Shown here: one piece after another, positions 27,425 to 49,161 of the stretch
Layout: every line of letters starts with the position of its first letter
Position numbering within the stretch: the stretch's first letter is position 1
Notes under the pieces: model-generated
What the model saw: the letters and a program-made list of their open reading frames with translations, nothing else
Database searches by the model: none
What the model was told of the DNA's origin: nothing
Translations under genes and position numbers: made by a program
NCBI RefSeq assembly: GCF_000143415.4
Contig: NW_003314269.1
Location: 1,495,544-1,559,543 of the forward strand
Source: Selaginella moellendorffii
Lineage: Eukaryota > Plantae > Lycopodiophyta
Direction: 5' to 3'
Length of the DNA: 64,000 nucleotides

Positions 27425-29468
27425 ATGTCGCTCCGGCCGCAAGCTCGCACTGAGGTGAGAAAGAAAGGATACAAGAATGCCGTCGATCCGGATGAGGCGC
27501 GCCGGAAGCGCGAGGACAACATGGTGGAGATCCGCAAGAACAAGCGCGACGAGAATCTCATGAAGAAGCGGCGAGAGGGCATGCAGCCGCAGCACTTTAT
27601 GACGCCCGGATCGATCGTGGAGAGAAAGGTATGCGCGTCTCTGGATTGGGGCGAGGGTGATTTGATTCACTGGTGGTGTGATTTCCTTCAGCTGGAGAGC
27701 TTGCCCGTGATGGTGAGCGGTGTCTGGTCTGACGATCCCAACTTGCAAGTCGAGGCGACGACCCAGTTCCGGAAGCTACTGTCAATTGGTAGCTTTTGAT
27801 GAAAATCTATTTTTTCTTGGTACTGACATGGGTGTTTGTGAAGAGCGAAGGCCTCCGATCGAAGAGGTCATCAAGGCAGGCGTGGTTCCTCGATTTGTAG
27901 AGTTTTTGAAGCGCCACGATTTCCACCAGCTTCAGGTATGCCCATTTTTTTTTCCTTGCGGTGTTTGGGTCGTTAATAGGAGTTTTAATGAGCAGTTCGA
28001 AGCTGCCTGGGCTCTTACAAATATTGCGTCCGGCACTTCCGATCACACGACGGTGGTTATAAACCATGGAGCTGTGCCTATCTTCGTGCAGCTTCTTTCA
28101 TCTCCCAGTGAGGATGTCCGCGAGCAGGTGATTTTTTCCTCTTGTATTTCCAAAGCTTGGAATCTGACATTGCCTACCGCAGGCAGTATGGGCTCTTGGC
28201 AATGTCGCTGGCGACTCTCCGAAGTGCCGAGATCTCGTCTTGAATAGCAATGCCATGATGCCTTTGCTAGCACAGCTGAACGAGAATGCGAAGCTGTCTA
28301 TGCTGCGCAACGCAACGTGGACGCTATCAAACTTTTGTCGTGGCAAGCCGCAGCCGAACTTTGAGCAGGTATGTGGGTCATTTGTAGGCATGTCGATACA
28401 AATTTGATCGTTGGTCGGTGTTGTTTCTTGCAGTCGAGACCTGCTTTATCTGCTCTAGAAAAGCTGATTCATTCGACTGACGAAGAAGTCCTTACTGATG
28501 CATGCTGGGCTTTGTCATACATATCCGATGGTACAAACGATAAGATTCAAGCTGTCATTGAGGCCGGTGTGTGTCCACGTCTTGTGAGTCTACTCATGTA
28601 AGTCGTGTCTTTAGCTGTGACTTTTAACTGGGCTGACGTTCCTGGTTCCAGGTATCCTTCACCGAATGTTCTCATTCCTGCTCTTCGTACGGTGGGAAAC
28701 ATTGTGACTGGTGACGATGTCCAAACGCAGGTAAACTTGAAACGGAACATCCTAGATATTTCTTACGCCTGTCTTTAAATTTATTTCCAGTTTATCATAA
28801 ACAATGGAGCGCTGCCATATTTGTTACATCTTCTTACCAATGTTTACAAGAAGAGCATAAAAAAGGAGGCTTGCTGGACAATCTCGAACATCACTGCCGG
28901 CAACAAGGACCAAATTCAGGCCGTCATTGAAGCCAACATCATTCCGCCTCTCGTGGAACTTCTTGCCAACGCAGAGTTTGACATAAAGAAAGAGGCAGCG
29001 TGGGCTATTTCCAATGCAACCTCTGGCGGTACACATGAACAAATCAAGTAGGTTGTCAATGCGCTGAGACGCTGTATCTGACTCTGGAGACGCAGGTATC
29101 TCGTGAACCAGGGATGCATCAAGCCTCTGTGCGACCTTCTCAACTGTTCCGATGCCAAGATCATTGTGGTGGCCTTGGAGGGCCTAGAAAACATCCTCAA
29201 GGTCGGCGAGACGGAGAAGGACCTGGGAAACACTGGCTCCATCAACATCTACGCTAAGTTCATCGACGAGGCGGAGGGCCTGGAGAAGATCGAGAAGCTG
29301 CAAACCCACGACAACAACGAGATATATGACAAGGTGATCAAGATCCTCAACAGCTACTGGGTGGAGGAGGACGAGGAGAACGTCGCTCCAGGTGTAGCTC
29401 CGGCCCCCGGACCATTTGCATTCGGGAATCAGCCTACTGTGCCAAGCGGTGGCTTTAATTTCGGTTGA
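27425..29468 (+). CDS. IMPA: Importin subunit alpha (intact copy)
   Basis: IBB domain [27 protein letters not shown]; ARM repeats [37 protein letters not shown]; C-terminal GGFNFG. Confidence 0.95.
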
Positions 29469-29909
29469 GGTATGTCTTTTCCTTTCCCTGGATCTCTCGA
29501 GTGACTGACTTGGTGTTTCTGTGGTAGAAGAACATCATCGAGTCGGGAGAAGAGATTTACTTGGTCCGCGATGTGAGCAGCATCCGCGATCTGTGGCAGA
29601 CGAAGCTGTGCTGGTGTAAAGTCGAGTTGAGTTTGAGCTAGTCGATGGTCGACAAGCTTTTTGCAGACCCACCGGGGGAAGGAGAGGGTCTTGTAGAACA
29701 GCAGCAAGCTCTTGCTGTCAAAGCAACGTCTCGTATTTGAGACGGTGCTCTTGTCTTTGTTTAGCCGGACGTGCTAAGTGCGGTGGTCGTTGTTGTGGCG
29801 GTGGCGTCTCCTCCTTTGTCCGAGGATCGTCATCGCTGCTACTATTACAAGGAGTGGATTTTGGGTTATAAAAGAGTCTATTACAAATTCGATGTATGCA
29901 AGGATTTAA

Positions 29910-30930
29910 ATGAATGAATGCATGAATGAGTTGAATGTCCTTGATGCTTCAAGCTTTTTGCAACTCCTTGGAAGACTTGAAGGTTTGGATCGCCAGCTTT
30001 GACTGCGTCGAGGAGGCTTTTGAGAAGATGCCGGCCAGAGATGCTGTGGTGATGTATGCCCAGACAGGGCATCTGGAGGCGTATAAGTCAATGTAATGAT
30101 CCGAGCTTATGCCCAGCACGCAAAAGATTGTTTGGAAGATGCTTGGACTCTGATTCTTGCGCTTGCTTCCGAAAAACATATATATGACACAAACTGGACT
30201 CGACTTCACACCATCACAGCTTCGTCTGCCACAGATCACTGACGCTATTCACATCGCGGACCAAGCAAATCTCTCTTCTCCTCTCTCCTGCAAACGGGGC
30301 AAATGCAGTCCTGTTTGAAAGGATGCCTCAAAGAGACGAGGTAATGACATGCCCGAGCACGATGTAGTGGTGACAACCGCAATCATGAAAAGCATATGCC
30401 CGCTCCGGGCATCTTTACCGTGTGAATGTTTTCGAGGTGTCCTGGAGTGTGTTGGTTCTTGCGGTGAGCTAGATCGAGCGCAGCAAATGGTTGAGTTGAC
30501 TTTTTAAACCATTCATTTAAACCCATACTTTATCGAAATACCCAAGAGACGATGCTGTGCTGGGGCATACGGAGCCGAGGAAATAAGTTCTTTTGAGCAA
30601 GGTTATCAAAGCAATTCCTCGCATCAATCCTTTTGACCCAACCATAAGCAGGCCGTCACAACAACCACATTCGTTTGAATTCCAATATCACGCGAGAGAC
30701 GAGATAGTCTCAGGGACACAAAAAATGTTACGTGACCACGAGTCTAAACAAGCTGGTTCTCTCGAGCTCTCCCCGGAAGTACGGTATTCCAGGCGTCCAA
30801 GCGAGGTCACATTCTTGCAGCCATGGAGGCTTGGTACCAGAAGGCTTGAGTTTGTTTTGTTCGCTGGAGCCTCTTAATCCCAGGTCTATGCACCGCTCTA
30901 GCAGAGCTTAGGGAACGCTTGGACTTAAAT
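29910..30930 (+). pseudogene. Scrambled, heavily deleted copy of PPR gene 43071..45218
   Basis: Collinear pieces of the PPR 5' part, an inverted middle segment (~30533-30815) and a forward 3' piece. Confidence 0.8.
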
Positions 30931-30939
30931 ATCTCTGGA

Positions 30940-31263
30940 CAGATTCTTTGTGTTTGTTTTAGATTGATCATTCAATCTTGCAACACACTCCCACGCGCGC
31001 TGGAGCTGCGCTCGCGAATCTCGATTCCAAGCTGCTGCAAGAGAGAGATCTGCGGAAAGCATTTGGCGTGCAAGATCCAACCCGTCGAAGGAATGCTAAA
31101 AAAACGGCGTAAGCGTACCTAAAGACTTGGATTGGAACTGACAAAGACGATCTCAGATATACACTACGGAGAATGGTCCATTGTTGTAAATTAATCAACG
31201 ATTTTAGTTGAAGCTCCACAAAGGAAGATTGAAGTTTCATGGCTTGAATTCTTTGAAACACTT
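30940..31263. pseudogene. Inverted relic of BCAT last exon plus CRR42 3' end
   Basis: Reverse complement of ~47630-47980 (e.g. KIQPVEGMLK, acgatctcagatatacactacgg, gcttgaattctttgaaacacttccc). Confidence 0.8.
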
Positions 31264-31350
31264 CCCAGGGCGAATTCCTCCATCGTTTTTACAGCATTGG
31301 AGAATTTACAATATTTGAATTCGTCGTGTTTAGATCACGAGCAGGGTTTC

Positions 31351-33298
31351 TGGTGAGCCGTGTCTGGTCTGACGATCCCACCTGAAGCTACTGTCTGGTA
31401 GCTGCCTTGTTCTTTTTGATGGAAGTCTATCTTTTCTTGGTACTGACATGGGTGTTTGTGAAGAGCGAAGCCCTCCGATCGAAGAGGTCATCAAGGCAGG
31501 CGTGGTTCCTCGATTTGTAGAGTTTTTGAAGCGCCACGATTTCCACCAGCTTCAGGTATGCCCATTTTTTTTCCTTGCGGTGTTTGGGTCGTTAATAGGA
31601 GTTTTAATGAGCAGTTCGAAGCTGCCTGGGCTCTTACAAATATTGCGTCCGGCACTTCCGATCACACGACGGTGGTTATAAACCATGGAGCTGTGCCTAT
31701 CTTCGTGCAGCTTCTTTCATCTCCCAGTGAGGATGTCCGCGAGCAGGTGAGGTTTTCACTTGTATTTCCAAAGCCTGGAATCTGACATTGCCTCGTACCG
31801 CAGACAGTATGGGCTCTGATACAAAAGGCAGCGACTGCTGGCAACGACTGCTCATATTGTATATATGAAGCTATATATACATGGGCTGTGGCAACTGCCT
31901 AATGCCACATCATCCTAACTGCCTAGCTAAGCATCTACCTGAGCATCTACTCTCAACACTCCCACTCAGGCGTGTCTACAAACTAAGACAAAGCCTGAAC
32001 ATAAGATGCTCAGCATGCATACAACTGATGAGGAAAACCTGCAAAAAGAAAAAACTCATCTGAACTGGTGGTACTCCACTGACTCCCACTCAAAGCGACT
32101 ACATCTTGTTGCTCTAGGGCTTGCTGCCTCTGCTACTCTTGGCTGCTTTGCCATCACTCCTTTGGCTGTTGCTGCTCCTCTCTTGGAGCTCTTTTGCCAC
32201 TGCTGGGCTTCTCAGCCAACTCTGCCGCTGCTATCTGCTGCCGCTCACTTGGCTGCTGCTGCTCCTCTCTTCGAGCATCTTGGCCACTCCTGCCGCCGTT
32301 CTGCTTCTCGGCCTGCTGAGTCACTGCTCTGCTGCTCCTGGGCTTCTTGGCTGCTCTGCTGCTCCTTTCTTGGAGCATATCAGCATCTTCTGCCGCTCCA
32401 GGGCTTCTGAGTCGCTACTATCTGCCACTCCTCGCTGCTGGTATGGCTCTGCCATTGCTTTGTTGCTGCTCTCTAGGCTACTCTGCTTCTGCCGTTGGCA
32501 TCTGGAAGCTTCTTCTTCTTCTTCATCCTTCACAGGTCCTCAAGATCTGTGCTCCGATACCATGATACAAAAGGCAGCGACTGCTGGCAACGACTGCTCA
32601 TATTGTATATATGAAGCTATATATACATGGGCTGTGGCAACTGCCTAATGCCACATCATCCTAACTGCCTAGCTAAGCATCTACCTGAGCATCTACTCTC
32701 AACAGGCTCTTGGCAATGTTGCTGGCGACTCTCCGAAGTGCCGAGATCTCGTCTTGAATAGCAATGCCATGATGCCGTTGCTAGCACAGCTGAACGAGAA
32801 TGCGAAGCTGTCTATGCTGCGCAACGCAACGTGGGCGCTATCAACCTTTTTTCGTGACAAGTCGCAGCCGAACTTTGAGCAGGTATGCGTGCGAGGCATG
32901 TCGATACAAATTGCGATCGTTGGTCGGTGTTGCTTCATGCTGAATAAATTATCTGGTACAGAGAACTCATGAATCTGTGCTGTGTTTGCCTTTCAGCTCC
33001 ACGAGGAGGTGGCTGAAAACATTGAATGCCTTGCTCGAGACGCCCAGATCCTTGGCATCCCGCAGCGCAGTCGAGACCTGCTTTATCTGCTCTAGAAAAG
33101 CTGATTCATTCGACTGATGTGGTAGTCCTTACTGATGCATGCTGGGCTTTGTCATCCGTATCCGATGGCATAAACGATGAGAAGCTGTCATTGAGGCCGG
33201 CGTGTGTCCACGTCTTGTGAGTTTAAGTCGTGTCTTTAGCTCTGACTTTTAACTGGGCTGACGTTCCTGGTTTCAGGTATCCGTCACCGAATGTTCTC
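31351..33298 (+). pseudogene. Importin-alpha pseudogene copy 2, interrupted by TRIM
   Basis: Near-identical to ~27711-28674 including introns; no IBB exon; TRIM inserted in the W-A-L codons; 3' half missing. Confidence 0.92.
31817..32704 (-). mobile_element. TRIM (non-autonomous LTR retrotransposon), 888 bp
   Basis: Identical 142-bp TG...CA LTRs (31817-31958, 32563-32704); 5-bp TSD GGCTC; minus-strand PBS TGGTATCGGAGC (32562-32551); PPT TGAGTGGGAG adjoining the other LTR. Confidence 0.95.
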
Positions 33299-33799
33299 AC
33301 ACTGTAGAGGCTTGATTGAGTTCTAAGCTGGAAGGCATCACTGTGAGCCCACTCTATACTTACGACGAAATCACTTTTGTTTTTTGCAAGAAGCAGCCAC
33401 CATGGAGTTCGTTGCAAATGTGGCTGCCTTTGAGTGCTTCAGCAAACGTGGATGCAGGAACTTGGTCGCTCAACTCTACTACCATGAAAAAACTTATGGC
33501 GTGATAATACCATGCCAGGTCTGTTCCTGCGAGCAGCTAGATCATTGCACTTTGGTATTGACAGATCAATTTCTGGCACGCTTCTCTCCTTTGGGCAATC
33601 TTTGCAAGCAGCTCAATCTGGAAGGAGTGAAAGAGAACGAGGTTCTCTTGCAACAACAACAGCAACAGCTATTTGAAGTCACGAGGACCTCACTGCTGGT
33701 GCGGAGTTGTGGACATGCAGGCTGAAGGATGGCAAGCAGCTCATCGCGAAGGTTTGTGGTGGCAGTGAAGGTACTTGCAAAGTTGCAGGTGTTGCCATT

Positions 33800-35300
33800 G
33801 TCCCATTCCTGTTTGTATGTTATGCAGTGTAGAGTGAAGTTTAGGGCAGTTTCAATGTGGTTTTCCCAGGGTAGTTTGGATCCCTCCTAATTACCAACTT
33901 TTGAGTGTAGGTGATGTTGTCCTACTTGATAGTGCGCCAGGATTCTAGGGTGGTGTTGTAGCTAGCAATACCGATAAGCCATTACGGGTTGATGGTCAAT
34001 AAATAGTGTTGTAATTTTGTGTCATGCCCCTTCTCAAGCCAATGATCTGGGACATCTATGGTATTTTCGTGGAGTGTGTCAAAATCCATGCGTAGATCTC
34101 TTTTCCAGAACCACAGATTGTGCCACCACCCTTTACTGGTGTCCTCAGCAAGGTATCTTAAGTAGTGTATATGATGTTGAGGATGTATTGCATTGTGTTT
34201 ATCTAGACAAGCTAGATTCCATAACTACAATCTCAATCCACTTTGTTGCAACCAAATTCAGCATTAAGGACAAATGGTTAAGTTGTTCCATTTTTGCTGT
34301 AGTCCAGATATATTATGTATGTGCATCCATAAGAAAATATTAGCTTGTGACTGCTTGAATGCATTTTATTGCCCTAGCCTTCCACAAATTCTTTTAGTGG
34401 ACCATATACCCAAGGTACTTGTAGTTTTCTACTCATTATTGTCATTTCTGTATGGTGGACAGCTAAATACTATGACTTGTGTTTTTGTGGGTTGATATGG
34501 GATACCTTTGCTTGGCACCTATCATGCATTCTACTGGTTGACTTAGGTATTTTACAAGAATTGTTGTATAGAGCTGTTGAATGGCTTGTAACAGCTTCTG
34601 GAGTGTTAGGCACCACAATTGATCACTTTTTTTGCCAATTGGATTAGGGTGTAAAGGATAGGATTTCCTTGTTAAAATAGTTCCCTTATTGAATTCTATC
34701 CAAAATAGTTGCTTCTTCTAGTATGTCTTATGTTCATGCATATAACTGGATGAACTAACACTTTCTACTTTATATTTCTCCACAGCTAGAACATGGCTAC
34801 CATTGTTTGCTTTTTATCACTCCAAAATATGGCTAAAATATAACTTGATTATAATTGGCAAGAGTCTGAACATTCCGCCTAATCTGAGTCACTAATAGTG
34901 TGGAGTCTAAGTATCTCAAACCAAAGGATGAAGTACCACATAAGTAACAAAAAAATTGTTTTACAACCATCTAATGTTGTTTATTTATTTGGCTTACCAG
35001 GCTTATGGAGTAAAATAGATTAGGTCTTATACAAACCACATAATATTGAAATATGGTATAGTGGCCATCTCTTGTTTTACTTGCTCTATCAAAGGAGAAC
35101 TTTCACAAGTGAGTTTTAGACTTGTGAGCATATGTATTAGAGTAGGAGTACTACACTTATAGAAAACCATTGGAGAATGTCCTTAATGTATTTGCTCTAG
35201 TGGAGAACAACAGAGTTATCCTTGGGATTTTGAGTCAATAGTATCTCAAAATGAGATGAAAAGACCTTTTTAATCTTAGCTAAAAACTTATATTGTTGCA
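33800..35300 (-). mobile_element. Possible highly degenerate retrotransposon pol remnant
   Basis: Weak integrase-like peptides on the minus strand (e.g. VATKWIEIV); AT-rich and stop-riddled. Confidence 0.25.
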
Positions 35301-36199
35301 AATGAGTACATAATCATTGACATAAACAATAATTTAGATTATGTTTTTTTATTGTAGTATATATGACCATGGGATGAGATTTAGATATACTATCATTATA
35401 GATCCTTAAAACCTTAGGGAATAAATAAGGATAAAATAGCTACTAAGACTTTTGTTTACCTTAAGGGGAGAAAGATAAAGTATAGGTATTGGAGTAAATA
35501 AGGTTTATTTTAGTCTGTAAATTAATTTAATGAGTCTCTAAATGTAGTTCTCTTGTCTAAGAACTTTATATCCTTCTAATAATCCATCCCAACTACTTGT
35601 GAATAGCCCTTGGCCACAAGAGCTTTGCCTTGTAACAAGAGATTAAATCATCTGGATTTACCTTAATTTATAAGGATTTTACCAAATTTTTGTTGCAAAG
35701 TGATTGTGGGTATTGAAAGTTATATGTTGGCAAGTCTTTTTAGATATTCTTCTCTTATTGTCACAATAACAAAAGATCAATATTGCTAATTCTTAGTCCC
35801 TTTTATTCAAGTGTTAATAAACTAAACTTAATATTTATATATATCTTCACATTAGGCCATGGTATGCTAAAATAATGCTAAATTCCATTTGGCTCTGTTG
35901 GACTTCCTAGAAGCTCACCCAACCCAATATCACTTAAACCCAAGGACATTTAACTCTAAATATCTTAAAACCCTTAACTAATTGGGAAAGAAAATGCACT
36001 CTTATTTATGGGCCCTTTTCCTAAACCCTTATAAATCATCTCTCAAATTATTTCTTTTTAATTGCTTACAATCCATTATGTTTCTTTATAAGTTCACACC
36101 TTTGTGAATGGAAGTTGAGAGCTATAGCTCTCTTAAGATTCCCACTCTTTTAACATCCTACCCTCGAATCAAACTTAACCAAACCAAATTATACCATCT

Positions 36200-37758
36200 A
36201 TTATAAGTAAAAAAGGATGTATGTTCTAGAAGGGGAATTAAGGAAAGTAGCTTTAAAAGAGTGTTATGATGGACCTCTTGCGGGACACGGCAGAGTGCCC
36301 AAAATGATGGGCTTATTCAAGAGGAAGTATCACTGGCTAGGTATGGTTAAAGACATTCAAGACTATGTAAAGACATATTCAACATATCAGTAGGTTAAAG
36401 CCATGACTAAAGCTAGTGGGGGCTTGTTACAAAGCATCCCAATTCCAAATCATCCCTAGAAATGTCTTATGATGGACTTCATCACAGGATTTTTCCCAAG
36501 TGAGGGGTTTGATATGATATTCGTGGTGGTGGACTGATTTTCAAAGATGGCACATTTTATACCCACCACAACGAAAGTGGATGTGGAAAGTGTGGCAAAG
36601 CTATTCTTTGAACAAGTGGTTCGAGTGCGGGAAAGGCTAAAGGAGATAATTTCAGATCAAGATAAGATCTTCACTAATAGGTTCTAAAGAAGTCTCCTGG
36701 AACAGTATCGCACCAAGTTGAAATTCAGCACAATCTATCACCCATAGACAAGTATTGGGTATTAAATCAAGTTGGATGACACTAACACTTCTTGGTAGAT
36801 GGACAAACAGAAAGGGTGAATAGGCAGCTGGAGGATTATTTGCAATGCTATGTCTTTGGAGACCAGACTGATTGGGTAAATCATTTGGGACTTGCAAAAA
36901 TGTGCTATAACAACTTACCACACTCAAGTATTAGGGTGAGTTCATGGGAAGTCATCAATGGGCAAGCTATTGAAGGTCCTATATAATTCTGCGTGGCCAA
37001 GTATCATGAAGAGTTACCCGCAGTGGAGGTATTCACAGCGGAAAGATTCAACATTTGGAATCTAATAAGGGATTCTTTGGAACAAGTTCAACAAAAGCAA
37101 ACCAAGTATGCAAACAAGAAGTGCCGAGATGTAGAGTTCTAACCTAGGGAGAAGGTGTGGCTGAACACCAAGAACCTAAGGCTACCAAGTGGGATCAGCT
37201 GGAAGTTGACCCAAAGGTAAAATGCATGTATTCTTGGAAATGAACTGATCTTGAGTTCCTTAAGCAGGTTCGTGGGGCCTTACAAGTGTAAGTAACCAAA
37301 GGGAACGACTTGAGAGACGATCTATAGGGGTTCAAATATAAAGGGAAAGGGCCCATGAACAAAAGTGCACCCCCTTTTCAATTGGTTAAGGGTCTTGGGA
37401 TATTTGGGGTTAAACGTCCTTGGGTTTGAATAATACTGGGTTGGGTGGTAAAGTGGCTTACCGCCTCCAACTTCCTCGAGAAATGGGGAAAATGCACTTA
37501 ATATTCCATATGAACTTATTCAAACCGTACTTTGAGGATCCACTTTACAAGGACCAAGTAAAACCTTTATCTAAGGTTATCCAAGGGAAAGAGGAATACA
37601 AAGTTGAGGCTATCCTCAATGCGCGCAAGAGCAAGCAACAAGGACGCAAAGTAAAGGAGTTCCATGTAAAGTGGAAAGGATTTCTATACTGCGAAGCAAC
37701 ATGGGAACCAAAGGACAATCTAGCGAACGCATGAGATCTAGTGGAGGAATTTATGTAA
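36200..37758 (+). mobile_element. Degenerate Ty3/Gypsy chromovirus integrase + chromodomain
   Basis: Zn-finger region (LKECYDGPLAGH...YHWLGMVKDIQDYVKT), MDFITG...VVVD*FSKMAHFIP, DGQTERVNRQLEDYL, chromodomain EEYKVEAILNAR...EFHVKWKGF...ATWEP; in-frame stops and insertions. Confidence 0.9.
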
Positions 37759-38269
37759 GGCAGAACTCTATGTACTTATATAAAGTTTAATTAAAGTATC
37801 AATTTGTGAAGTTGAGCAATGGCATATGTTGGGACCTATAGTTGTGCCAAAGGTAAGCTAATTAACATAGGTTAGCTATATCGACCAAGCATAGGAAACT
37901 ACGCTTGACTCTCCACAAGGATGTAAATGTATTTTACAAAAGTTGGGTTCAAGTCTCAACCCTCTAGTAAAGCAAAGTTGGGTTCAAGTCCCAACTTTAT
38001 ACTAGGGTGTGGTGAGGTGAGGTGTGTAGGAATACTTATACTCTATTGTCATGGGCTCTTGGCTGGGGAGGCTAACTTAGGCACACCGCTAAGTGGGGGG
38101 ATGCCCCGGGAGACATGGTCAACAAGTCATAGGATGTAAAAGATGTGTTTAATGTGGGTGTTGAACTTTTTCTATGGGTGGTGGAGTTGTAAAGAACCAA
38201 CTCCCTAAAGTGTCGAAGGCTAAAGGATCTCTGAAAGCACGACCAAAATGATAAAGAGTTCATCAGATG

Positions 38270-38530: not shown

Positions 38531-39744
38531 AACTAATATAGGTCATGGGGTGAAAGGCCAAAGCGTGTGTCTCCTGGGGGGGGGGGGGGAGGGGGCTGCA
38601 AGGGGTTCCAAAAGTATAGTAAGGATAGTGAGGTCCAGAAACTAGTCTTGAAGGAACTCTCCAGTAGTGCTTCCAAACTAACTTGAGGTTGAGACTGAGG
38701 CGAAGGGGCTTTGGGTGGGAGTGAGCATGGATTCGGGTGGTGCCGGAGGCCACCCAAGGAAGTGCTCAAGAATAGCTCCTACTCCCAGAAGGGAAATTGA
38801 CTGTGGTGCTCCCGGCTCATGTGGAGTGGTGCCCCACTTGAGTACCTTGCGGCTGTAGTGCATGTGGTTTTAATCCTTTATCATATGGGGCTTTACCATA
38901 AGATAACACCATGAAGCGGAACCTAAACCCTCTTTATGCCATGTGTCACATGCCACGTGTCCATAGAACAGTGGTGTGGAACCCGAGGTTCAAGGCCTTG
39001 GGCCACTGAACGAAGGAACAATGCCAAACTCCCAAGCATGGAGCCAAGGAGTGATGAAACCGAACCATGGAGCAATTCTCGAGCATACAGCCCAAGGAGC
39101 GAAGGGACAAGAGCCCAAAGCGATTGGAACAGTCCTAGAGCAACCAGCATCCCAATGCCAGGACCAACATACAAAACGGAGCCCAACAAGGTTTGGCGCT
39201 ATTTCAGCATACCAGTGGCCTAACGCAAGGACATGGGTACTCCACTAGCTAGCATGGTGTGGAACTTGGGCTTAGACCCAAGTTGGATGCAGAACAAAGA
39301 CAGACACGCAAGCAGGAGCTAGACTATGCCTACTATACATTTGGAACCCTTTACAGATTAAATACATACACGAAGAAATGATTTGCAATGAGGTGTGATA
39401 TCATTACTTATATTCACTTCATGCAATCAAGAGTTTTTATTTTGATGCATGTTAATTATGATGGTCTTACAAGTGGTGAGTCATAAGTGGATAGTGGTGA
39501 AATGCTAAATCATTTTGTTTAGACTTGCTATTGCAATACTTAATTCTTTTCCAAAGAACTTTGTTACTATTCCTTAGGTAACTTGGTGTTAAATTAATTT
39601 TGAGTTTTGTCAAGTATAAACTTGCTGATGTTATAATTGAAGTTAGTGGTGTTATATATATTATAAATCTTTGTAAGTGAAATATGATATTTATATTGCA
39701 TTTTGTTACTTGGAGTTGACACTTAATACTATAGTAATGCAAGG

Positions 39745-40490
39745 CTTGGGGCATATCCCAGGTAGGGGATATTTCCTCAGCAGTCTCAATACAATATCTT
39801 CTCTTAGCTTACTGGCTATTTCGAAAAGTACAGGTGTCAAGAACAGTCATTCCAAAAATGCAATCTTAGTGTTTTTGGAAATGAAATCTAGAGGAATTCT
39901 TCTAGACTCCATCACTTAGAAAAAACTTTGCAAAGCTGGGTCTCTTCTTGTGGCAAATCTGATTATGAGAAACTAACATCAACATGATGGTAGCTATTGA
40001 ATGTATGGGAAATGCTCTGAATTGTGGGCTGCCGATTGTGTGTTTTTCTCAAGGTTTGTTTGTACCACTGTGTCTTGGAATGCCGTGATTCAGCATATGC
40101 TCAAATGGAAATATTTGCAAAGTGTTGGGCTTCTTTATGGACATATTTTTGGACAGTGTTTCTCCACACATTCTTAGTTCTCATTCATTCATTCATATTC
40201 ATTCATAAGTTGTTTATATTTATATATATTTACATACAGTGTTTTGCCAAGTGAGGTTTTATTCTTAGTTCTATGCAGCCATGGAGGCTGGTTCAGAAGG
40301 CTTGAGTTTGTTTTGTTCAGGCTCATGTGTAGCAGAGCTTGGTGCAAAGGCTGGATGGGGAACGCTTGTTGCACGTGAAGAAAATATTGGGGCTTGGACT
40401 TTGGCATTGGCAGCATTTATTAGTGAGTGTAGACAGTGCTAAATATGCTCTTAATTTCATATGCTTTGTGTAGATAATTATGTAAATTCT
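39745..40490 (+). pseudogene. PPR pseudogene fragment (3' part of 43071..45218 paralogue)
   Basis: Collinear with ~44337-45230 (gtaggggatatttcctc, tctagaggaattctt, gtaccactgtgtcttggaatgccgtgatt, tgctaaatatgctct), with deletions and stops. Confidence 0.85.
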
Positions 40491-40546: not shown

Positions 40547-40985
40547 ATGACTTCTATATTGAAGAGTTGCTTGATTAATAGATTGGGAAGCCTCAAAGTG
40601 AAAGCTCTGGATGGCAATGCGAATGAGGAGCCAAGAAAAGTGGAAATTGTTCCCGAGGGATGGCAAATCTTGAAGCCCATTCCCGAGATCAACAACCTTG
40701 GCTCTGCTTCGTCATCCAAAGGGATTGGCATTGGAACTCCAGTAGTAGTCACTGAGGCTCCTCAAATCCTCAAGACTGCCGAGCCAATGCCAATGCTGCG
40801 CAAAAACGATGGAGTAATTCGCCCTGGGGATGTTGGCAGGTAAATCTCTACCACAAATTCCTTTTTGTACTCAGGAAAAACTGTGCAGGATAATTGATAG
40901 GAGACCAAAGAATGTCTGGGCTGTGAGGTTCGCCATCGGAGCTTATCTAATCGATGGGAAGTGTTTCAAAGAGTTCAAGCCATGA
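40547..40985 (+). CDS. CRR42: Chlororespiratory reduction 42-like (DUF3148) NDH assembly factor, 2 exons
   Basis: GTPVVVTEAPQILKTAEPMPMLR...IRPGDVGR|IIDRRPKNVWAVRFAIGAYLIDGKCFKEFKP*. Confidence 0.85.
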
Positions 40986-41027
40986 AATTTCAATCTTCCT
41001 TTGTGGAGCTACAACTAAAATCGTTGA

Positions 41028-41275
41028 TTAATTTACAACAACGAACCATTCATGGCCGCAGTGTAATATATCTGTGATCGTCTTTGTCAGGTTTCCACAC
41101 AGATTAAACGGGATCTCTTGTCATGCCTCGGGATCCATTGATTCGCAGGTAAGCTACGAGCTGGCCGTGTTTTTTAGCATTCCTTCGACGGGTTGGATCA
41201 TCCACCTGCCAAATGCTTCCAGCAGATCACCTCTTCCAGAAGCAGCTTCAATCTCAACCAAACACAAAGAATCTA
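41028..41275 (-). pseudogene. BCAT last-exon relic
   Basis: Collinear with 47689-47975, with deletions. Confidence 0.8.
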
Positions 41276-41405
41276 AACCCCGGAGATGCCCGATGCGACC
41301 TGGGCCTCGTTGATCTTTTGGGCTCTCTTACCTTTCAGAGAAAAGGTATAAAATAAACCTGTCGATTTGTGGAGTTTTTCCAGCTTAAGTCTATTTTTTC
41401 CTAAA

Positions 41406-42683
41406 GGTGTTTGGGTCGTTAATTCGAGTAATGGGCTCTTACGAATATTGCGTCTGGCACTTCCGATCACACAACGGTCGTTATAAACCATGTTCGCAGT
41501 TTTAAGCCTTGGAACCTGACATTGTCTCGTACTACAAGCAGAATGGGCTCTTGGTAATGTCGCTGGCGACTCTCCAAAGTGCCGAGACCTCGTCCTGAAT
41601 AACAATGCCATGACGCCGTTGCTAGCACAGCTGAACGAAAATGCGGTGCTGTCTATGCTGCGCACCGCAACGTGGACGCTATCAACCTTTTGTCGTGGCA
41701 AGCCGCAGCCGAACTTTGAGCAGGTATGCATGCGGGTCCTTTGTAGGCATGTCGATACAGATTTTGGTCGTTGGTCGGTGTTGTTTCATGCAGTCGAGAC
41801 CTTCTTTATCTTCTCTAGAAAAGCTGATTCATTCGACTGATGAGGTAATCCTTACTGATGCATGCTGGGCTTTGTCATACATATCCGATGGCACAAACAA
41901 TGAGATTCAAGCTGTCATTGAGGTCGGCGTTTGTCCACGTCTTATGAGTTTACTCATGTAAGTCGTGTCTTTAGCTCTGACTTTTAACTGGCCTGACGTT
42001 CCTGGTTCCAGGTATCCTTCACCGAATGTTCTTATTCCTGCTCTTCGTACGGTGGGAAACATTGTGACTGGTGACGATGTCCAAACGCAGGAAAACTTGA
42101 AACGGAACAACAATGGAGCACTGCCATATTTGTTACATCTTCTCACCAATGTTTACAACAAGAAGGATGCTTGCTGGACAATCTCGAGCATGGAACTTCT
42201 TGCCAACGCCGAGTTTGACATAAAGAAAGAGGCAATGCAACCTCTGGCGGTACACATGAACAAATCAAATAGGTTGTCATTGCGCTGAGACGCTGTACCT
42301 GACTCTGGAGATGCAGGTATCTCGTGAACCAGGGATGCATCAAGCCTCTATGCGACCTCCTCAACTGTTCCGATGCCAAGATCATTGTGGTGGCCTTGGA
42401 GGGCCTAGAAAACATCCTCACGGTCTGCTAGACGGAGAAGGACCCGGGAAACACTGGCTCCATCAACATCTACGCCAAGTTCATCGACGAGGCGGAGGGC
42501 CTGGAGAAGATCGAAACCCACGATAACAACGAGATATACGACAAGGTGATCAAGATCCTCAACAGCTACTGGGTGGAGGAAGACGAAGAGAACGTTGCTC
42601 CTGGCGTAGCTCCAGCGCCCATTTGCATTCGGGAATCAAGATCATTCGGGAATGTGCCGAGTGGTGGCTTCAATTCCGGTTGA
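41406..42683 (+). pseudogene. Importin-alpha pseudogene copy 3
   Basis: Collinear with ~27960-29468; 5' exons lost, splice donor mutated near 42091, multiple deletions and frameshifts. Confidence 0.92.
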
Positions 42684-43070: not shown

Positions 43071-45218
43071 ATGAATGAAATGAATGAGTTGAATGTCTCC
43101 AAGCTTATAGCTTCTTGCAACTCTTTGGAGGATGCGAAGGCTTTGCATGGACAAGTTGTGAGGCAAGGTTTGGATCGCCAACTTTTCATTGGCACTGCAC
43201 TTGTAAGAATGTACGGGAGATTGGGCTGCGTGGAGGAGGCTAGGTGGATTTTTGAGAAGATGCCGGCGAGAGATGCTGTGGCCTGGACTGTGATGCTCTG
43301 GGTATATGCCCACGCAGGGCATCTTGAGGAATGTAGGAGGACGTTTTATAAGATGCCCAGGCAGGACGTGGTGGCCACGAATGTGATGATCCGAGCTTAT
43401 GCCCAACACGGGTGTATGAAAGAAGCAAAAATACTGTTTGGAAATATGCTTGAACCGAGTGTGATGTCGTGGAACTCTATGATTTCTGGCTACTGCTTGA
43501 GTGGGTCTTTGGTAGAAGCCCGAGAGATGTTTGATCGCATGCCTGCGAAGGACGTGGTGACATGGACGATACTGTGCCGTAGCTACGCGCAGCATGGTTA
43601 CATTTGTGAGGCAATGAAGCTATTCGAAAATATTCCAGAGAAAAATGTTGTTTCATGGAACTCCTTAATTTCCGCTTTTGCCGAAACGGGGAAAATGCAG
43701 TACTGCGTCGTCTTGTTCGAGAGGATGCCCCAGAGAGACATTGTGTCGTGGAGCATCTTGTTTTGGGCATTTTATCATTATTTTGAAAATTTTGAAAACG
43801 CAGAAAAAGTTTTTAATGACATGCCCGAGCACGATGTAGTGGTGACAACCGCGATCATGGAAGCATATGCCCGGTGCGGGCATCTTTACCGTGTGGAAGA
43901 AATGTTTTCATATATGCCGTTTCGAAGCGAGGTGTCTTGGAATGTGTTGGTTCTCGCGCTCGTCCAGAGTGGCGAGCTAGATCGAGCACAACAAACGCTT
44001 GAGTTGATGGACGGACAAAGTCCTCACGTCTGGAACACCGTACTTGCGGGGAGAGCTCGAGAGAACCAGATTGAGAAAACCCTTTACTTGTTTAGACTCA
44101 TGGACCTGCAAGGGCTGAGAGCCGATCACGTAACATTTGCGAGCGTTTTGGGTGTTTGTGAGACTATCTCGTCTCTCGAGTTGATCCGCGCGGAGGTCAC
44201 CAGCATTGGAATTGAAACAAATGTGGTTGTTGCGACGGCCTTGATTGATGCTTATGGTAGGGTCGGAATGATTGATGCCGCGAGGAATTGCTTTGATAAC
44301 ATTGCTCAAAAGGACTTGTTCGTGTGGACTGCGATGCTTGGGGCATTTGCTAAGGTAGGGGATATTTCCTCGGCGGTCTCCGTGTTTGAGAATATGCCCC
44401 AGCACAGCATCGTCTCTTGGAACTCGCTTCTTTCCACGTATTTGAACGCTGGGTATTTCGAAAAAGCACGGGTGCTGCTCGACACAGCTCCCGAGCGCCG
44501 TGTTTCAACATGGAACGTTTTGATTGGATCATGCGTCAAGAATGGTCGTGCCGAAGATGCAATCTCAGCGTTTCTGGAAATGGAGTCTAGAGGAATTCTT
44601 CCAGACTCTGTCACTTGGATACAACTTTGCGGAGCTGGGTCTCTTCTTCACCAAAGCAAACTTGTGGCAAATCTGATCACAAGAAATTGTTGGAAGCACG
44701 ACGTGATGGTCAGTACTGCAGTTATCGACATGCATGGGAAATGCTCTGAATTACAGGCTGCCGAATTTGTGTTTAGCACGATGCCTGTTTGTACCACTGT
44801 GTCTTGGAATGCCGTGATTGCGGCCTATGCTCGGAATGGAAACATTTGCAAAGCATTGGGCTTCTTTAGGGAGATGTTTTTGGACAGTGTTCCTCCAAAC
44901 GAGGTCACATTCTTAGTTCTCATGAATTCATGCAGCCATAGAGGATTGGTCCCTGAGGGCATGAATTTGTTTTATTCCCAGGAGCTTCCTAGTTCCAGGT
45001 CTATGCATCACTCGTGTGTAGCAGACCTTAGTGCAAGGGCTGGATGGGTAACGCTTGATGCAAGTGAAGAAAATATTGGGGCTTGGACTTCTGCATTGGC
45101 AGCATTTATTCGCCAAGGGGACTACATGAATGGGGTGGATGTGATCAGACGTATTGTAACACTAGGTAATGCTAAATATGCTCTGTTAATCTCAAATCTT
45201 TATGCTTTGTGCAGATGA
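43071..45218 (+). CDS. PLS-class pentatricopeptide repeat protein, degenerate E region, no DYW
   Basis: Intronless 715-aa ORF; repeats of the type MPxRDVVSWN; ends YALLISNLYALCR. Confidence 0.9.
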   Translation: MNEMNELNVSKLIASCNSLEDAKALHGQVVRQGLDRQLFIGTALVRMYGRLGCVEEARWIFEKMPARDAVAWTVMLWVYAHAGHLEECRRTFYKMPRQDVVATNVMIRAYAQHGCMKEAKILFGNMLEPSVMSWNSMISGYCLSGSLVEAREMFDRMPAKDVVTWTILCRSYAQHGYICEAMKLFENIPEKNVVSWNSLISAFAETGKMQYCVVLFERMPQRDIVSWSILFWAFYHYFENFENAEKVFNDMPEHDVVVTTAIMEAYARCGHLYRVEEMFSYMPFRSEVSWNVLVLALVQSGELDRAQQTLELMDGQSPHVWNTVLAGRARENQIEKTLYLFRLMDLQGLRADHVTFASVLGVCETISSLELIRAEVTSIGIETNVVVATALIDAYGRVGMIDAARNCFDNIAQKDLFVWTAMLGAFAKVGDISSAVSVFENMPQHSIVSWNSLLSTYLNAGYFEKARVLLDTAPERRVSTWNVLIGSCVKNGRAEDAISAFLEMESRGILPDSVTWIQLCGAGSLLHQSKLVANLITRNCWKHDVMVSTAVIDMHGKCSELQAAEFVFSTMPVCTTVSWNAVIAAYARNGNICKALGFFREMFLDSVPPNEVTFLVLMNSCSHRGLVPEGMNLFYSQELPSSRSMHHSCVADLSARAGWVTLDASEENIGAWTSALAAFIRQGDYMNGVDVIRRIVTLGNAKYALLISNLYALCR

Positions 45219-45700
45219 TCTAAATTCAAGCACAAAAGAACATAACTTTTGTTTATGATTTTTTGCTTAGGTGTTTAAAAAATATACCTGTTGGAAATGC
45301 ATGTTTGAATCATCTCACAAGCCAGCACTTTGCTCTTTATATTATGAAACAATTAACAACTTTATTCATGATGGGATCCTCTTGAGCGGTATGTAAGTTT
45401 TAAGAAACTCATAAACAGACAAAATCTTCTAAATTTGTACAGTCATGTTCATTCTATTTCCATTGGTTATAAGTTCTTGTAGACAACAAAGATAAAAATC
45501 GTAAGAATAAAAACTTTATAAAATGTGAACTCTCAAACTTGAAAAATAAAATCTAAAGTCTTGGGAGTCATTGCAGTCTGGCTATGAATTGGCTGGCTCA
45601 AAAGCAGCAACAATCAAAAGAAAAGATCACTACTTATCACCCTCACCATGAACTATAACCTCATCCATGCCAACAGCTCTAGCAAAATTTGATTGGTAGT

Positions 45701-45924
45701 TGCAATCTCTATTACTATACAGTGACATATGAGCGCCATGTATGTTCGAGAGAAATGTGTTTTGATCAATGGTCTTGTAGGCTGCCCAAGTCCATGGTAA
45801 CAAGGGCTATGGCCTTATTTGATGGCAACTGCAATCTCTACTATACAGCAATATGAGCAGTGCCACTTATGTTGAAATGTTTTTTATCAATAGCCTCATA
45901 GGCTGCCCAAGTCCAGGTTACAAC
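45701..45924. repeat. Imperfect ~130-bp tandem duplication
   Basis: gcaatctct...ctatacag...taggctgcccaagtcca occurs at ~45702 and ~45831. Confidence 0.65.
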
Positions 45925-47399
45925 TAGGCTAACAAAGGCCATGCTTTTAACCATTAAGGTTCATCCCATTTGCTCCTATATATAGCTATATGATTTTCAG
46001 TAAACTATGCATAATAAGTCTTGTAGTGGTCAAATACTATATATAAATTATAATTCTCATAAAGAAATTCTTTATAAGGCTGCATTTAAAATGTATGAAC
46101 TATATTGGAGATTTAACATCCTATTGGAGAAGCTTTATGACAAAGTTGGGTCATTGGATTCTTTGAAACCAACCTCTAGCTGCAAGTATTGGAACTGAGG
46201 TCCCAGATAGGCAACTCAAGTTTTGGTAGATGCACTTACCACGCAAATAACAGTTGTTTGGTATTGTCCTTGAGGAGGCTCTGTGCAGTGTGGGAGAAGC
46301 AAGACGACATTGTACTGACCAACTCCTTAGGTTCAAGATGCTTAGTGTGAGCAGCTCGGTACATGAGTGAATCTAGAACAACATGCACTTAAAAAACTAG
46401 CTTTCTCCAAAAAAGGCACTATACATTGCTCAGGAGATCCACGCCTTGCAAAACATCAATATGCTAAGTCATGAAGGGTTGCAAACGAACTTATCCAACA
46501 GCAAAGAGATAAGATTTATGTCAACAAAGGTGTTTGTCATATCACTTCATATCAGCTTTATTCGGCATAAAAGGTTCATATGCTATCAACATGCTGGCTC
46601 AAAAAGATTGTTGATGACCTGACATACAAAAAAACTCACCAACTTAAAGTGAGTATTAACACTAATAAAGAAAATTATCATGTATTCCCATGCTGGTGAG
46701 CCTCTACCTGTAATGATCTCGAGAGATCATATTTCAAGGCCAGCAGAAGTGAGAAGATTTACATGCATAATGTAGATAGAAAAGATTTCAATTGTTTCTT
46801 GTCATTAGCTTGAAGGTTTTAGCAACTTATATTGTCCATTATAGTTGATTTCACTTCTAATAATCTCAATTAAAGATAATTTAACATACAAAAATTCACA
46901 AATATCTAGAAATTTTATAAGCTGGACCTAGGCAAGTCTAAACATTTTTATTTTTCTATTTTGTTTCTATCTTGAAGCCATTTACAATAGTCTTCCATCT
47001 ACTATATGTTACATTTACCCATAAATTTCATTTCCATAAAGAGCTCACAATCTTATAAAATTCATTATCCTAGTAAAGCATCTCTGAATATTTTTTTTTA
47101 TTTAGTCCAGCATAGTTAGATTACTTGCTAGTTATAACTATAAGGTGACATATCCCTATGTATTGTATGTTTAATATATATTTTTATCTACAAATGAAAA
47201 AAATCATTTTCAAAATAAGCATTTGTTTCAAATAATTTTTGATAGCTTGTGCATAATTTTTTTTGTTTTTTAAATTAAGCAGTGATTACAACGCTTTTTG
47301 CATCAAGGTTGGTTTAATTCTTTAGTTAAGTTTTAAGTAAAGAAAATTTGTCTGCACTGCAATGAGTTTGAGTTTTCTAAAAGAGCATCAATTGAGAAT

Positions 47400-47652
47400 A
47401 AAGAATTAATGGGAGCAGCTCTAAATGACGCCATAAACAAAGTAGAAATTGTTCTACTTCTATTGGCATTGGAACTCTAGTAATAGTCACTGAGGCTCAA
47501 CTAATTCGTCGTGGGGTAAATTTCTACCGCAATTTGTAAAGTGTGCAGGATAATTGATGGAGACCGGGCCGTACACATTGATTAGATGGTTCTCTAGGTT
47601 GGCCATTGAAGCTTATCTAATCGATGGGAAGTGTTTCAAAGAATTCAAGCCA
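47400..47652 (+). pseudogene. CRR42 pseudogene
   Basis: Deleted copy of 40547-40985 (attggcattggaactc, gtcactgaggctc, gcttatctaatcgatgggaagtgtttcaaaga). Confidence 0.85.
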
Positions 47653-47688
47653 ATCTTCCTACTGTGGAGCTACAACTAAAACCGTTGA

Positions 47689-49161
47689 TTAATTTACAAC
47701 AACGGACCATTCGCTTGAAACATGGCCGTAGTGTATATCTGAGATCGTTCTTGTCAGGTATCCACACAGATTAAACGGGATCTCTCGGGTTTTACAGTCA
47801 TGTCTCGAGATCCATTGATTCGCCGCTTCCAAGTTGAACGGCACGCTTATGAGCTGGCCGTTTTCTTTGAGCATTCCTTCGACAGGTTGGATCATGCACG
47901 CTGTACCAGTGCCAAATGCCTCCAGCAGATCACCTCTAGCAACAGCAGCTTCAATCTAAAACAAACACAAAGAATCTCTCAGAAGAGAAAGAAGAAAGGT
48001 TTTCCATACCTCTGGAAAGTTTAAAGGTCGCTCCGAGACTTTGAGGCCCGGTATGTTACTGGCGAGCTTGAGAACCGTGTCTCTGGTAACTCCTGGGAGA
48101 ATAGTTCCATCGAGAGCTGGTGTAACGAGCTCCATTGCGCCACTCTTGGTTCCATCTCGCAGCAGAAAGAAGATGTTCATGGAGCCTGCTTCGCCAATTC
48201 TCTCCGTCCCTTCGAGCACGTATAGCACCTGTGAGCATCCTCGTTTGGCAGCCTCCAGCTGAGGGAGCACAGTCTGAGCGTAGTTGCCACCCAGCTTTCT
48301 ATCACCAACACCACCTGGATATGCCCGGACGTTTCTTCGGTCCACAAAGAGTTTGACGGGCTTGAGACCGGTAGGAAAGTATGGACCGACTGGTGAGAGG
48401 ACCACAAAGAGCATCCCTTCTCGTGGGGCCTGAATTCCCAAGCACGCCTGTGTCGCGATCATAGCCGGACGGATGTAAAGCGAGAAACCTTCTTTGCTGG
48501 GAATCCAATCGCGTTCTAGACGGACCAGCTCTTTGATGCAGTCAAGCAGCTCCATCTACACGAAGGAAGAAAGGAGAATTACGACGCCACATCGAAGCAC
48601 GCCACATTACCTTGTCAAACTCCGGAAGAGCTAGGCGCTGAGCGGACTTGAGAAGCCTGTTCATGTGCATTAGAGGCCGGAAGAGGCGAATCCGACCGTC
48701 TTTATCCTTGTAGGCCTTCATGCCTTCGAAGCATTCTGTGGCGTAGTGCAAAACTTGTGCGCAAGGATGAAGCTTTAGGTGCTGCAGAGGATTTATTTCC
48801 GGGGAGAGCCATCCCTGCTGCTCGTTCCAAGAGATTTGGAGCATGTGGTCTGTTGTCTCGGCTCCAAATTTGAGAACGTTCGCATCAGCTACAGGCTTTA
48901 CCTGTCCAAAAGCGTGAGCTTTTCCACTAAGATCAAGGAAAAAAAACAAAAAAAACTCACCTTGAGCCTGCCAGACCGATTCACCACCAAGTTATCAAAG
49001 CATATATCCGAGCTGGGAAGTTCAACCGGCTCGTGAGCCGAAGCAACAGCCTGCTGGAGAGGCAGCGACTTGAACTCGCTGTTGAAACTCGTCCACGAAC
49101 TGATACTTCTCGCCTGGATCCAGCACCATCTCATTAACTTCGTCCTCGGGAGCCTCTCCAT
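47689..49161 (-). CDS. BCAT: Branched-chain amino acid aminotransferase (animal/fungal-like type), probable mitochondrial presequence
   Basis: KFGAETTDHML, VLHYATECFEGMKAY, RLFRP, SLYIRP, GDRKLGGNY (PLP Lys), EAGSMNIF, ILPGVTRD, EAFGTGTA; 4 exons. Confidence 0.92.

Follow-up and report, generated by a model that had tools for sequence, protein, structure and literature searches.

Within a 22-kb stretch of the genome of the spikemoss Selaginella moellendorffii lie three decayed tandem copies of a segment of ~5 kb, and each of the four genes involved, encoding importin-alpha (IMPA), a PPR protein, a CRR42-like protein and a branched-chain aminotransferase (BCAT), is intact only once. From the sequence at the unit boundaries, we consider it probable that the segment was duplicated in tandem with breakpoints inside importin exon 2 and the BCAT last intron, and that the resulting junction was copied later. 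Importin-alpha and BCAT were thus probably never fully duplicated, these edge genes having been cut once and not reciprocally lost, and true loss of redundancy concerns PPR and CRR42 only.

Layout of the array

The order importin-alpha, PPR, CRR42, BCAT occurs three times between 27.4 and 49.2 kb of the window, the 64,000-nt stretch of contig NW_003314269.1 that was analysed, as established by self-BLAST and protein-to-DNA alignment (Table 1). Self-blastn and a repeat search of the window delimited the three units by collinear matches, all with E-values of 1e-17 or lower (down to 0), the first segment of the repeat in unit 1 being the importin gene from ~27711 onward. Unit 1 holds the intact importin-alpha gene, unit 2 the intact CRR42 and unit 3 the intact PPR and BCAT genes; every unit has at least one intact gene. 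Both the tandem triplication and the single intact copy of each gene had been proposed in the initial annotation; the former was confirmed by the collinear self-matches and the latter by alignments of all copies, and all elements that it listed were recovered at or close to the positions it gave.

Exons were searched singly, and the database importin P0036 was aligned to the genomic DNA with a small, purpose-written spliced aligner. Comparison of a 175-aa importin exon with the representative library returned mostly repeat matches and was used only as a source of full-length reference proteins. No match was obtained when the complete window was scanned for Rfam families and tRNAs, or when its PPR and FRIGIDA-like ORFs were looked up as exact sequences. 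A 340-aa ORF upstream of the importin gene (26304-27326, minus strand) had no Pfam match and no convincing Atlas match, and is possibly spurious.

Table 1. Features of the triplicated segment, with positions counted from the first nucleotide of the window.
Feature	Unit	Position	Strand	Description
Intact IMPA gene	1	27425-29468	+	10 exons, introns ~39-62 nt; Pfam and spliced alignment
PPR relic, scrambled	1	29947-30925	mixed	tblastn and spliced alignment with intact PPR
Inverted block	1	30941-31300	-	End of BCAT last intron and last-exon relic, CRR42 3' end and exon 1 piece
CRR42 relic	1	31240-31300	inverted	3' end and 37-nt exon 1 piece (31264-31300)
Importin fragment	2	31352-33299	+	aa ~75-294; lacks exon 1 and 3' half; frameshift at 33179
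TRIM-like miniature LTR retrotransposon	2	31817-32704	-	888 bp; in exon-5 remnant of importin
Non-coding filler	2	33300-39793		In place of importin 3' half and PPR 5' two-thirds
PPR relic	2	39794-40427	+	aa 478-682; 3 stops and 3 frameshifts; spliced alignment
Intact CRR42-like gene	2	40547-40985	+	2 exons (40547-40839, 40889-40985); TGA 40983-40985
BCAT tail	2	41028-41274	-	Last 22 nt of last intron and degenerate last exon
Junction interval	2/3	41275-41360		86 nt between unit 2 tail and unit 3 importin; no significant match
Importin pseudogene	3	~41361-42620	+	aa ~130-511; exons 1-2 missing; internal deletion, part of exon 8
Intact PPR gene	3	43071-45218	+	Single 715-aa ORF
AT-rich DNA	3	45111-47438		2.3 kb; no unit 2 counterpart; replaces 5' half of CRR42 exon 1
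CRR42 relic	3	47439-47650	+	Exon 1 pieces (47439-47454, 47462-47498); exon 2 (47542-47650)
Intact BCAT gene	3	47689-49161	-	4 exons; ATG 49161; stop 47691-47689; last intron ~48009-47956

Working genes and relics

The importin gene of unit 1 aligned exon by exon with residues 10-517 of the 517-aa P0036, without stop or frameshift, and has the IBB domain (Pfam, E = 5e-22) and armadillo repeats (Arm, E = 1e-17) that mark importin-alpha proteins of ~520-540 aa. The fragments in units 2 and 3 are not open: both lack the IBB exon and start inside or after exon 2, exon 1 being missing in both, and between them they carry frameshifts, a stop, the TRIM and truncations. The lesions in unit 3 are frameshifts at 41534, 42286 and 42317 and a stop at 42429. 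The 5' part of the unit 2 fragment is 97-100% identical to the working gene. Units 1 and 2 agree at 100% over 27981-28155 and at 91-94% further 3', where all three unit pairs are about equidistant; to judge from this alignment, the 5' near-identity looks like a gene-conversion tract from the working gene.

The intact PPR gene is an array of 35-aa motifs in one open frame, matching PF01535 (E = 8e-93) and PF13041 (E = 2e-85) with eight separately significant stretches each. It is identical to SELMODRAFT_87015 at 489 of 490 residues. The RefSeq protein P0152 (710 aa), from another scaffold, aligns with it gap-free to a shared C-terminus at 95.5% identity. The last 35 codons of the intact gene fall within the AT-rich DNA of unit 3. 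The pieces of the unit 1 relic correspond to aa 12-312 (direct), aa 321-466 (inverted, 30497-30796) and aa 619-~665 (direct), and a 96-nt inverted copy of the region upstream of PPR lies at 30190-30285 in the same unit.

The working CRR42 gene was assigned by PF11347 in exon 1 (E = 2.7e-13) and by identity to the annotated S. moellendorffii protein SELMODRAFT_73051 at 64 of 64 residues, across both exons and the 49-nt intron. In the unit 3 relic, exon 2 has a 1-nt deletion and an insertion and has lost the stop region, while in unit 1 the stretch 31264-31300 matches 40828-40790.

The BCAT exons aligned with residues 25-115, 115-297 and 299-365 of human BCATm in PDB alignments, a full-length match to this branched-chain aminotransferase, a class IV, fold type IV PLP enzyme; the gene also matches PF01063. 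The motif GGVGDRKLGGNY is aligned with human GGVGNYKLGGNY, and we take its lysine to be the PLP-binding residue. The BCAT tail of unit 1 occupies 30941-31240 in inverted orientation, with a 62-nt insertion in its last-exon relic; 30941-30967 equals 47977-47951 at 100%, and 31031-31267 matches 41243-40955.

Insertions and age of the units

The insertion in the unit 2 importin fragment, suspected from the outset to be a TRIM, can be read as such in the sequence: its 142-bp LTRs are 100% identical with TG..CA ends, and it is flanked by a 5-bp target duplication (GGCTC). A PBS-like sequence, TGGTATCGGAGC, lies on the minus strand next to one LTR and presumably matches the consensus for plant initiator tRNA-Met with one mismatch. 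The ORFs of the element have no Pfam match, and no gag/pol ORF is present. It thus has the short LTRs, target-site duplication and PBS by which TRIMs are recognized, and it resembles known TRIMs in its 888-bp length, TG/CA LTRs, 5-bp duplication, tRNA-Met-type PBS and absence of coding capacity. The insertion is very young; the identical LTRs imply that it took place long after the units had diverged.

The filler of unit 2 includes a remnant of a Ty3/gypsy-type integrase C-terminus and chromodomain (37420-37734), which bears out the retroelement debris reported earlier for this unit, and a tandem repeat with a 12-nt period (38238-38541). A search for transposon hallmarks around this filler and around the 2.3-kb insertion of unit 3 yielded only the chromodomain/integrase remnant and short repeats.

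With retroelement remains and a TRIM inside unit 2, capture of gene fragments by a transposon of the Helitron or Pack-MULE type, instead of tandem duplication, might be considered; we regard it as scarcely credible. The fragments retain the order, orientation and spacing of their intact neighbours, introns and intergenic DNA included, no terminal repeats bracketing a unit were found in the repeat search of the window, and the TRIM itself arrived too late.

At unconstrained sites, the divergence between units ranges from 6 to 28%. JC distances are 0.19-0.20 at importin intron sites for units 1-3 and 2-3 and 0.18-0.28 in the tail blocks, and each unit has its own distinct insertion. Judged by these distances, the unit copies are old and distinct (K about 0.2). 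Such divergence also bears on the idea of an assembly artefact, in which head-to-tail joining of the two haplotypes, or of collapsed reads, had produced a spurious repeat. The S. moellendorffii reference does contain both haplotypes, with near-identical PPR proteins on two scaffolds, but the units differ by more than those PPR copies do (95.5% amino-acid identity), show unit-specific insertions, inversions and deletions, and hold different intact genes, so that an artefact has next to no probability. The divergence, the lesions peculiar to single units and the kept collinearity led us to reject both an artefact and transposon capture.

Unit boundaries and origin of the array

Both relic BCAT tails end at the same base, equivalent to 47977 (41274 in unit 2 and 30941 in unit 1), which lies 22 nt inside the BCAT last intron and places the breakpoint at 47977/47978. 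Past this base the flanks are unrelated. Only ~50 nt (31301-31351) and 86 nt (41275-41360) separate the tails from the following importin fragments, intervals too short to accommodate the 1.2 kb that the BCAT tails lack or exon 1 of importin. The stretches 31291-31351 and 41275-41360 scored no better than shuffled sequences against importin exons 1 and 2 or against each other; the latter may represent filler at the junction or a remnant in advanced decay. In searches of the window (tblastn at E <= 1e-3 and blastn-short), neither the IBB exon nor the stretches 27000-27710 and 47978-49400 turned up again, not even as fragments, so that the 425 nt upstream of importin exon 1 and the 1.2 kb with BCAT exons 1-3 are likewise single, while relics elsewhere in the array are still detectable at 67-93% identity. 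The promoter-bearing 5' end of importin stands only ahead of unit 1 and the three 5' exons of BCAT only after unit 3. The inner genes were fully copied: the PPR pieces of unit 1 span aa 12-665, and traces of CRR42 exons 1 and 2 occur in units 1 and 3.

We propose that the ancestral locus had the order IMPA(+) - PPR(+) - CRR42(+) - BCAT(-), and that ~5 kb, from the middle of importin exon 2 (~27711) to 22 nt before the end of the BCAT last intron (47977), would have been duplicated in tandem. This would have created one junction, with the BCAT last exon fused to a headless importin, and that junction would have been copied as the array expanded to three units, for which unequal crossing-over is the simplest mechanism. 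Importin would then be single-copy in the first unit and BCAT in the last because the edges of the repeat unit fell within both genes. Only PPR and CRR42 were truly triplicated. Each of them later lost two of its copies, through inversions and deletions in unit 1, a large replacement by retroelement-derived DNA in unit 2 and the 2.3-kb replacement in unit 3. Gene conversion in the 5' portion of the importin fragment in unit 2, followed by insertion of the TRIM into the same fragment, would have come later.

Two features of the boundaries fit this history less well. The junction is the same to the base on the BCAT side, whereas on the importin side the start corresponds to 27711 in unit 2 and to ~27898 in unit 3; these breakpoints do not visibly coincide, and later deletion or decay in unit 3 must be assumed. 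The inverted tail block of unit 1 ends precisely on the junction base, which is unexpected for a later independent inversion, and a plain head-to-tail duplication may thus be too simple a description of the first event.

Full cassettes could instead have been duplicated once, after which one boundary deletion took BCAT exons 1-3, the spacer and importin exon 1 before the junction was copied. If the deletion came before the second duplication, the resulting sequence would be identical, and this history likewise predicts the shared BCAT breakpoint, the headless importins and the absent 5' parts. It demands one event more than duplication with intragenic breakpoints, however, has no positive evidence, and competes with partial duplicates that arise directly and often (PMC3857721); we hold it to be unlikely. 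In worm and fly mutation-accumulation lines, partial or complete duplication occurs at ~3 times the rate of complete duplication (PMC3857721).

Gene loss and persistence of the array

The initial annotation had explained the array by reciprocal gene loss (fractionation). This explanation holds for PPR and CRR42, of which all units retain traces, and is not supported for importin and BCAT, which show no 5' trace, no room for one and a shared breakpoint. Probably not all genes were once full in all units, since importin exon 1 and BCAT exons 1-3 left no trace.

In its full form, the explanation has the whole four-gene cassette triplicated, every gene then removed from two units by independent losses, and the array locked by selection against collapse. 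The four genes, each intact once, and the presence of at least one of them in every unit agree with it, and reasoning over the block map indicates that most products of unequal crossover would break or delete a working gene. Yet it requires four separate deletions of the 5' parts of the edge genes, two of them ending at one base, and no trace is left of these parts or of the BCAT-to-importin spacer. Moreover, with the edge genes fixed and survival random, each unit keeps an intact gene with a probability of 1-(2/3)^2 = 5/9, so the spread of survivors over three units needs no special explanation. Independent loss from complete cassettes is accordingly very unlikely.

The putative lock, taken alone, is mostly valid, following logically for most unequal-crossover products. 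It is incomplete, given that an exchange between units 1 and 2 in their PPR relics (30811-30911 and ~40195-40290) would remove no working gene, and the idea is not new in kind.

Comparison with known systems

The array shares with other tandem segmental duplications that have intragenic breakpoints the head-to-tail layout A-[BCD]-[BCD]-[BCD]-E, in which a complete first gene is confined to the opening unit and a complete last gene to the closing one, and the copying of one junction sequence between units. It differs in having three units instead of two, in its age (K about 0.2), in the in-situ inversions within one unit, one of which ends at the junction base, and in the blurred importin-side breakpoint of unit 3. 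Partial duplicates are frequent among new duplications (PMC3857721).

As in fractionation, PPR and CRR42 have each returned to one working copy, with the survivors in different units; reverting to a single copy is described as what happens most often to duplicates (PMC9252495). In contrast to fractionation, a concept used mostly for whole-genome or dispersed duplicates, the copies are neighbouring tandem units, and the process applies to two of the four genes, the other two probably never having been redundant.

A further reading starts from the converging CRR42 and BCAT genes, whose stop codons were 42 nt apart in the single-copy ancestor; their transcripts must, on this reading, therefore have overlapped. 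Duplication and complementary decay would have uncoupled this interfering pair, and the array would now be kept in place by selection against unequal-crossover collapse. In the present array, transcription of each working gene runs out into a dead partner. If the reading were true, the survival of CRR42 in unit 2 and of PPR and BCAT in unit 3 would be more than drift; we consider it improbable.

Significance

The pattern of the array is an ordinary outcome of tandem duplication and opens no new biological question. It offers a worked example of a trap: genes that are each intact once across a tandem array mimic reciprocal gene loss, while half of the pattern here is the signature of breakpoints inside the two outer genes. 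Also documented are a very young TRIM insertion and the apparent conversion of a gene fragment by its working counterpart. Its value for annotation is that it sorts genes from pseudogenes among the importin, PPR, CRR42 and BCAT copies at this S. moellendorffii locus.

Structure of the array

This locus, in the nuclear DNA of Selaginella moellendorffii, is an old tandem segmental duplication of an ordinary kind. It comprises three units, its breakpoints most likely fell within genes, and the redundant copies of the inner genes later became pseudogenes. Collinear blocks from self-blastn and a repeat search of the window define three units in the order importin-alpha, PPR, CRR42 and BCAT, in agreement with the tandem triplication proposed in the initial annotation. 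All 12 elements listed there are present, according to gene alignments, relic mapping, and the recognition of a miniature LTR retrotransposon (TRIM) and a retroelement remnant. Exons were searched singly, each as a separate query.

Coordinates of features in and around the array (window positions; minus-strand features are marked)
Feature	Unit	Position	Details
1-kb direct repeats		6944-8001; 15035-16012	86% identity, 8 kb apart, no long ORF between
340-aa ORF (minus)		26304-27326	just upstream of importin; ~100-nt tandem repeat inside at 26525-26728
Working importin, aligned region	1	27350-29600	10 exons, introns ~39-62 nt
IBB-domain ORF	1	27380-27799	Pfam; Arm repeats in next ORF
In-situ inverted blocks	1	30497-30796; 30941-31300	
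Importin fragment	2	from 31352 (= 27711, mid exon 2)	aa 105-294 only; frameshift at 33179
Tandem repeat in filler	2	38238-38541	12-nt period, GAGTCCGAGACC-like
Intact CRR42	2	40547-40839 + 40889-40985	49-nt intron
Tail block	2	40882-41274	
Importin fragment	3	from about 41361 (= about 27898, end of exon 3)	aa 140-511; frameshifts 41534, 42286, 42317; stop 42429; exon 8 gap
Intact PPR	3	43071-45218	715-aa ORF
CRR42 relic	3	47439-47498; 47542-47650	exon-1 scraps; frameshifted exon 2
Tail block	3	47542-47977	
Working BCAT (minus)	3	ATG 49161; stop 47691-47689	ATG opens an upstream exon
FRIGIDA-like gene (minus)		49804-51828	directly downstream of BCAT, outside repeat; Pfam PF07899 E = 9e-61 and 3e-13, two ORFs
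Second PPR gene (minus)		54792-56474	unrelated; about 26% identical to array PPR

Working copies and relics

Protein-to-genome alignment with P0036, a 517-aa reference importin, covered aa 10-517 in unit 1, with neither stop nor frameshift over those residues in 27350-29600. The residues and lesions of the two importin fragments were read from the same kind of alignment, and their starts from nucleotide alignment. The ORF upstream of importin had no Pfam match and no convincing Atlas match, and may be spurious.

The intact PPR frame is identical at 489 of 490 residues to SELMODRAFT_87015, a JGI model that skips aa 275-496. It aligns gap-free through its final residue, at 95.5% identity, with P0152, a 710-aa RefSeq PPR protein encoded on another scaffold, which presumably represents the other haplotype; the 32 differences in 708 aligned residues are high for alleles. 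Its last 35 codons lie in DNA without a counterpart in unit 2, where the relic, limited to aa 478-682, is interrupted by three stops and three frameshifts. In unit 1 the relic is broken into pieces that lie between aa 12 and about 665, and the stretch aa 321-466 is inverted.

The CRR42 reading frame of unit 2 matches SELMODRAFT_73051 at 64 of 64 residues across the intron, and what remains in unit 1 is inverted and amounts to 37 nt from exon 1 plus the final ~30 nt of exon 2. BCAT is a genuine branched-chain aminotransferase, its exons aligning to human BCATm residues 25-115, 115-297 and 299-365. CRR42 (plus strand) and BCAT (minus strand) converge, with stop codons 42 nt apart at 40983-41030 and 47650-47691, so that their 3' UTRs must overlap in a single-copy arrangement. 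Within the array, each working gene of this pair now faces a dead partner.

Unit 2 contains the TRIM-type element that the initial annotation had placed in its importin. The LTRs of this 888-bp insertion are 142 bp long and 100% identical; the element also has TG..CA ends, a GGCTC target duplication and, on the minus strand, the PBS-like TGGTATCGGAGC adjoining the right LTR. The retroelement debris reported for this unit was likewise recovered, as a chromodomain and integrase C-terminus remnant in the filler. Elsewhere in the window, the 1-kb direct repeats probably represent both LTRs of an LTR retrotransposon that is old and degraded.

Ages of the units and probable gene conversion

At importin intron sites, unit 3 lies at a Jukes-Cantor distance of 0.19-0.20 from units 1 and 2, and the tail blocks (CRR42 3' end plus BCAT last exon) differ by 0.18-0.28 in all unit pairs. 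From these distances we conclude that the three units are old and roughly coeval. An assembly artefact is ruled out by the divergences between units together with the unit-specific lesions. Over 27981-28155, identity between the importin copies of units 1 and 2 is 100%, and it is 97-100% where 27794-28196 of the working gene is compared with 31414-31817 of the fragment; further 3' the identity is 91-94%, and the three pairs are equidistant there. This gradient probably reflects a tract of recent gene conversion, with the working importin as donor and its fragment as recipient, not a young duplication. The youngest event is the TRIM insertion, since its LTRs are identical.

A shared breakpoint

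The alignment between the tail blocks of units 2 and 3 ends abruptly. The working BCAT, in sense orientation, runs from exon 3 through GTATGG...CTTCTGAG/AGATTCTTTGTGTTTGTTTTAG to exon 4, and BCAT homology in unit 2 starts exactly at AGATTC, 22 nt before the intron end. The inverted tail of unit 1 starts at the same base (30941 = 47977, 27/27 identical), and the flanks past this junction base are unrelated in each copy. Because two independent deletions are not expected to share an end point to the nucleotide within a gene of 1.5 kb, BCAT was truncated once and the truncation was then inherited. The inverted block at 30941 ends exactly at the junction base, which a later independent inversion would not explain.

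Each BCAT tail is followed by an importin fragment without exon 1; the gap is about 50 nt at the boundary of units 1 and 2 and 86 nt at that of units 2 and 3. On the importin side the two junctions have different breakpoints (equivalents of 27711 and about 27898), which requires a later deletion in unit 3. The IBB exon and the intervals 27000-27710 and 47978-49400 each occur once in the window, without even a fragmentary second copy; other relics are still detectable there at 67-93% identity. Duplication of the full cassette, followed by one boundary-spanning deletion that was then inherited, is less likely but possible from this sequence alone. Among new mutations, duplicated segments commonly have partial duplicates at their edges (PMC3857721).

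Proposed history

In the most likely history, with breakpoints inside genes, the repeat unit would have extended from importin exon 2 to the last BCAT intron, about 5 kb before later insertions, and a replication template switch is a possible origin of the first rearrangement. The layout would be A-[BCD]-[BCD]-[BCD]-E, with importin as A+B and BCAT as D+E, so that a complete importin could stand only at the left edge and a complete BCAT only at the right. PPR and CRR42 would be the sole genes ever present in triplicate. Their complete copying is shown by the unit 1 relics, which together cover most of PPR, and by traces of both CRR42 exons in units 1 and 3. Each unit was later damaged in its own way. 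Unit 1 underwent two in-situ inversions and deletions. In unit 2, about 6.4 kb of retroelement-derived DNA took the place of the 3' half of importin and the 5' two-thirds of PPR, and in unit 3 a 2.3-kb stretch of AT-rich DNA displaced the 5' half of CRR42 exon 1.

The reciprocal loss of all four genes proposed in the initial annotation holds for PPR and CRR42, whose redundant copies decayed; it is not supported for importin and BCAT, which were probably cut by the duplication edges, as indicated by the shared breakpoint and the lack of second 5' copies.

Stability and single-copy state

The accompanying argument, that the array is locked because collapse by unequal crossover costs working genes, is logically sound in part. 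For exchange between units 2 and 3, the position of the crossover would decide whether PPR, CRR42 or both are lost; exchange between units 1 and 3 would break importin or delete CRR42; and exchange between units 1 and 2 within importin would break that gene. The lock is incomplete: if units 1 and 2 recombined through their ~100-nt PPR relics, only dead DNA would be lost. PMC9252495 describes return to single copy as the commonest fate of duplicates. Once the edge genes are taken as fixed, the chance is 2/3 that PPR and CRR42 survive in different units, and 1-(2/3)^2 = 5/9 that no unit is left without an intact gene; the pattern of an intact gene in each unit therefore needs no special force.
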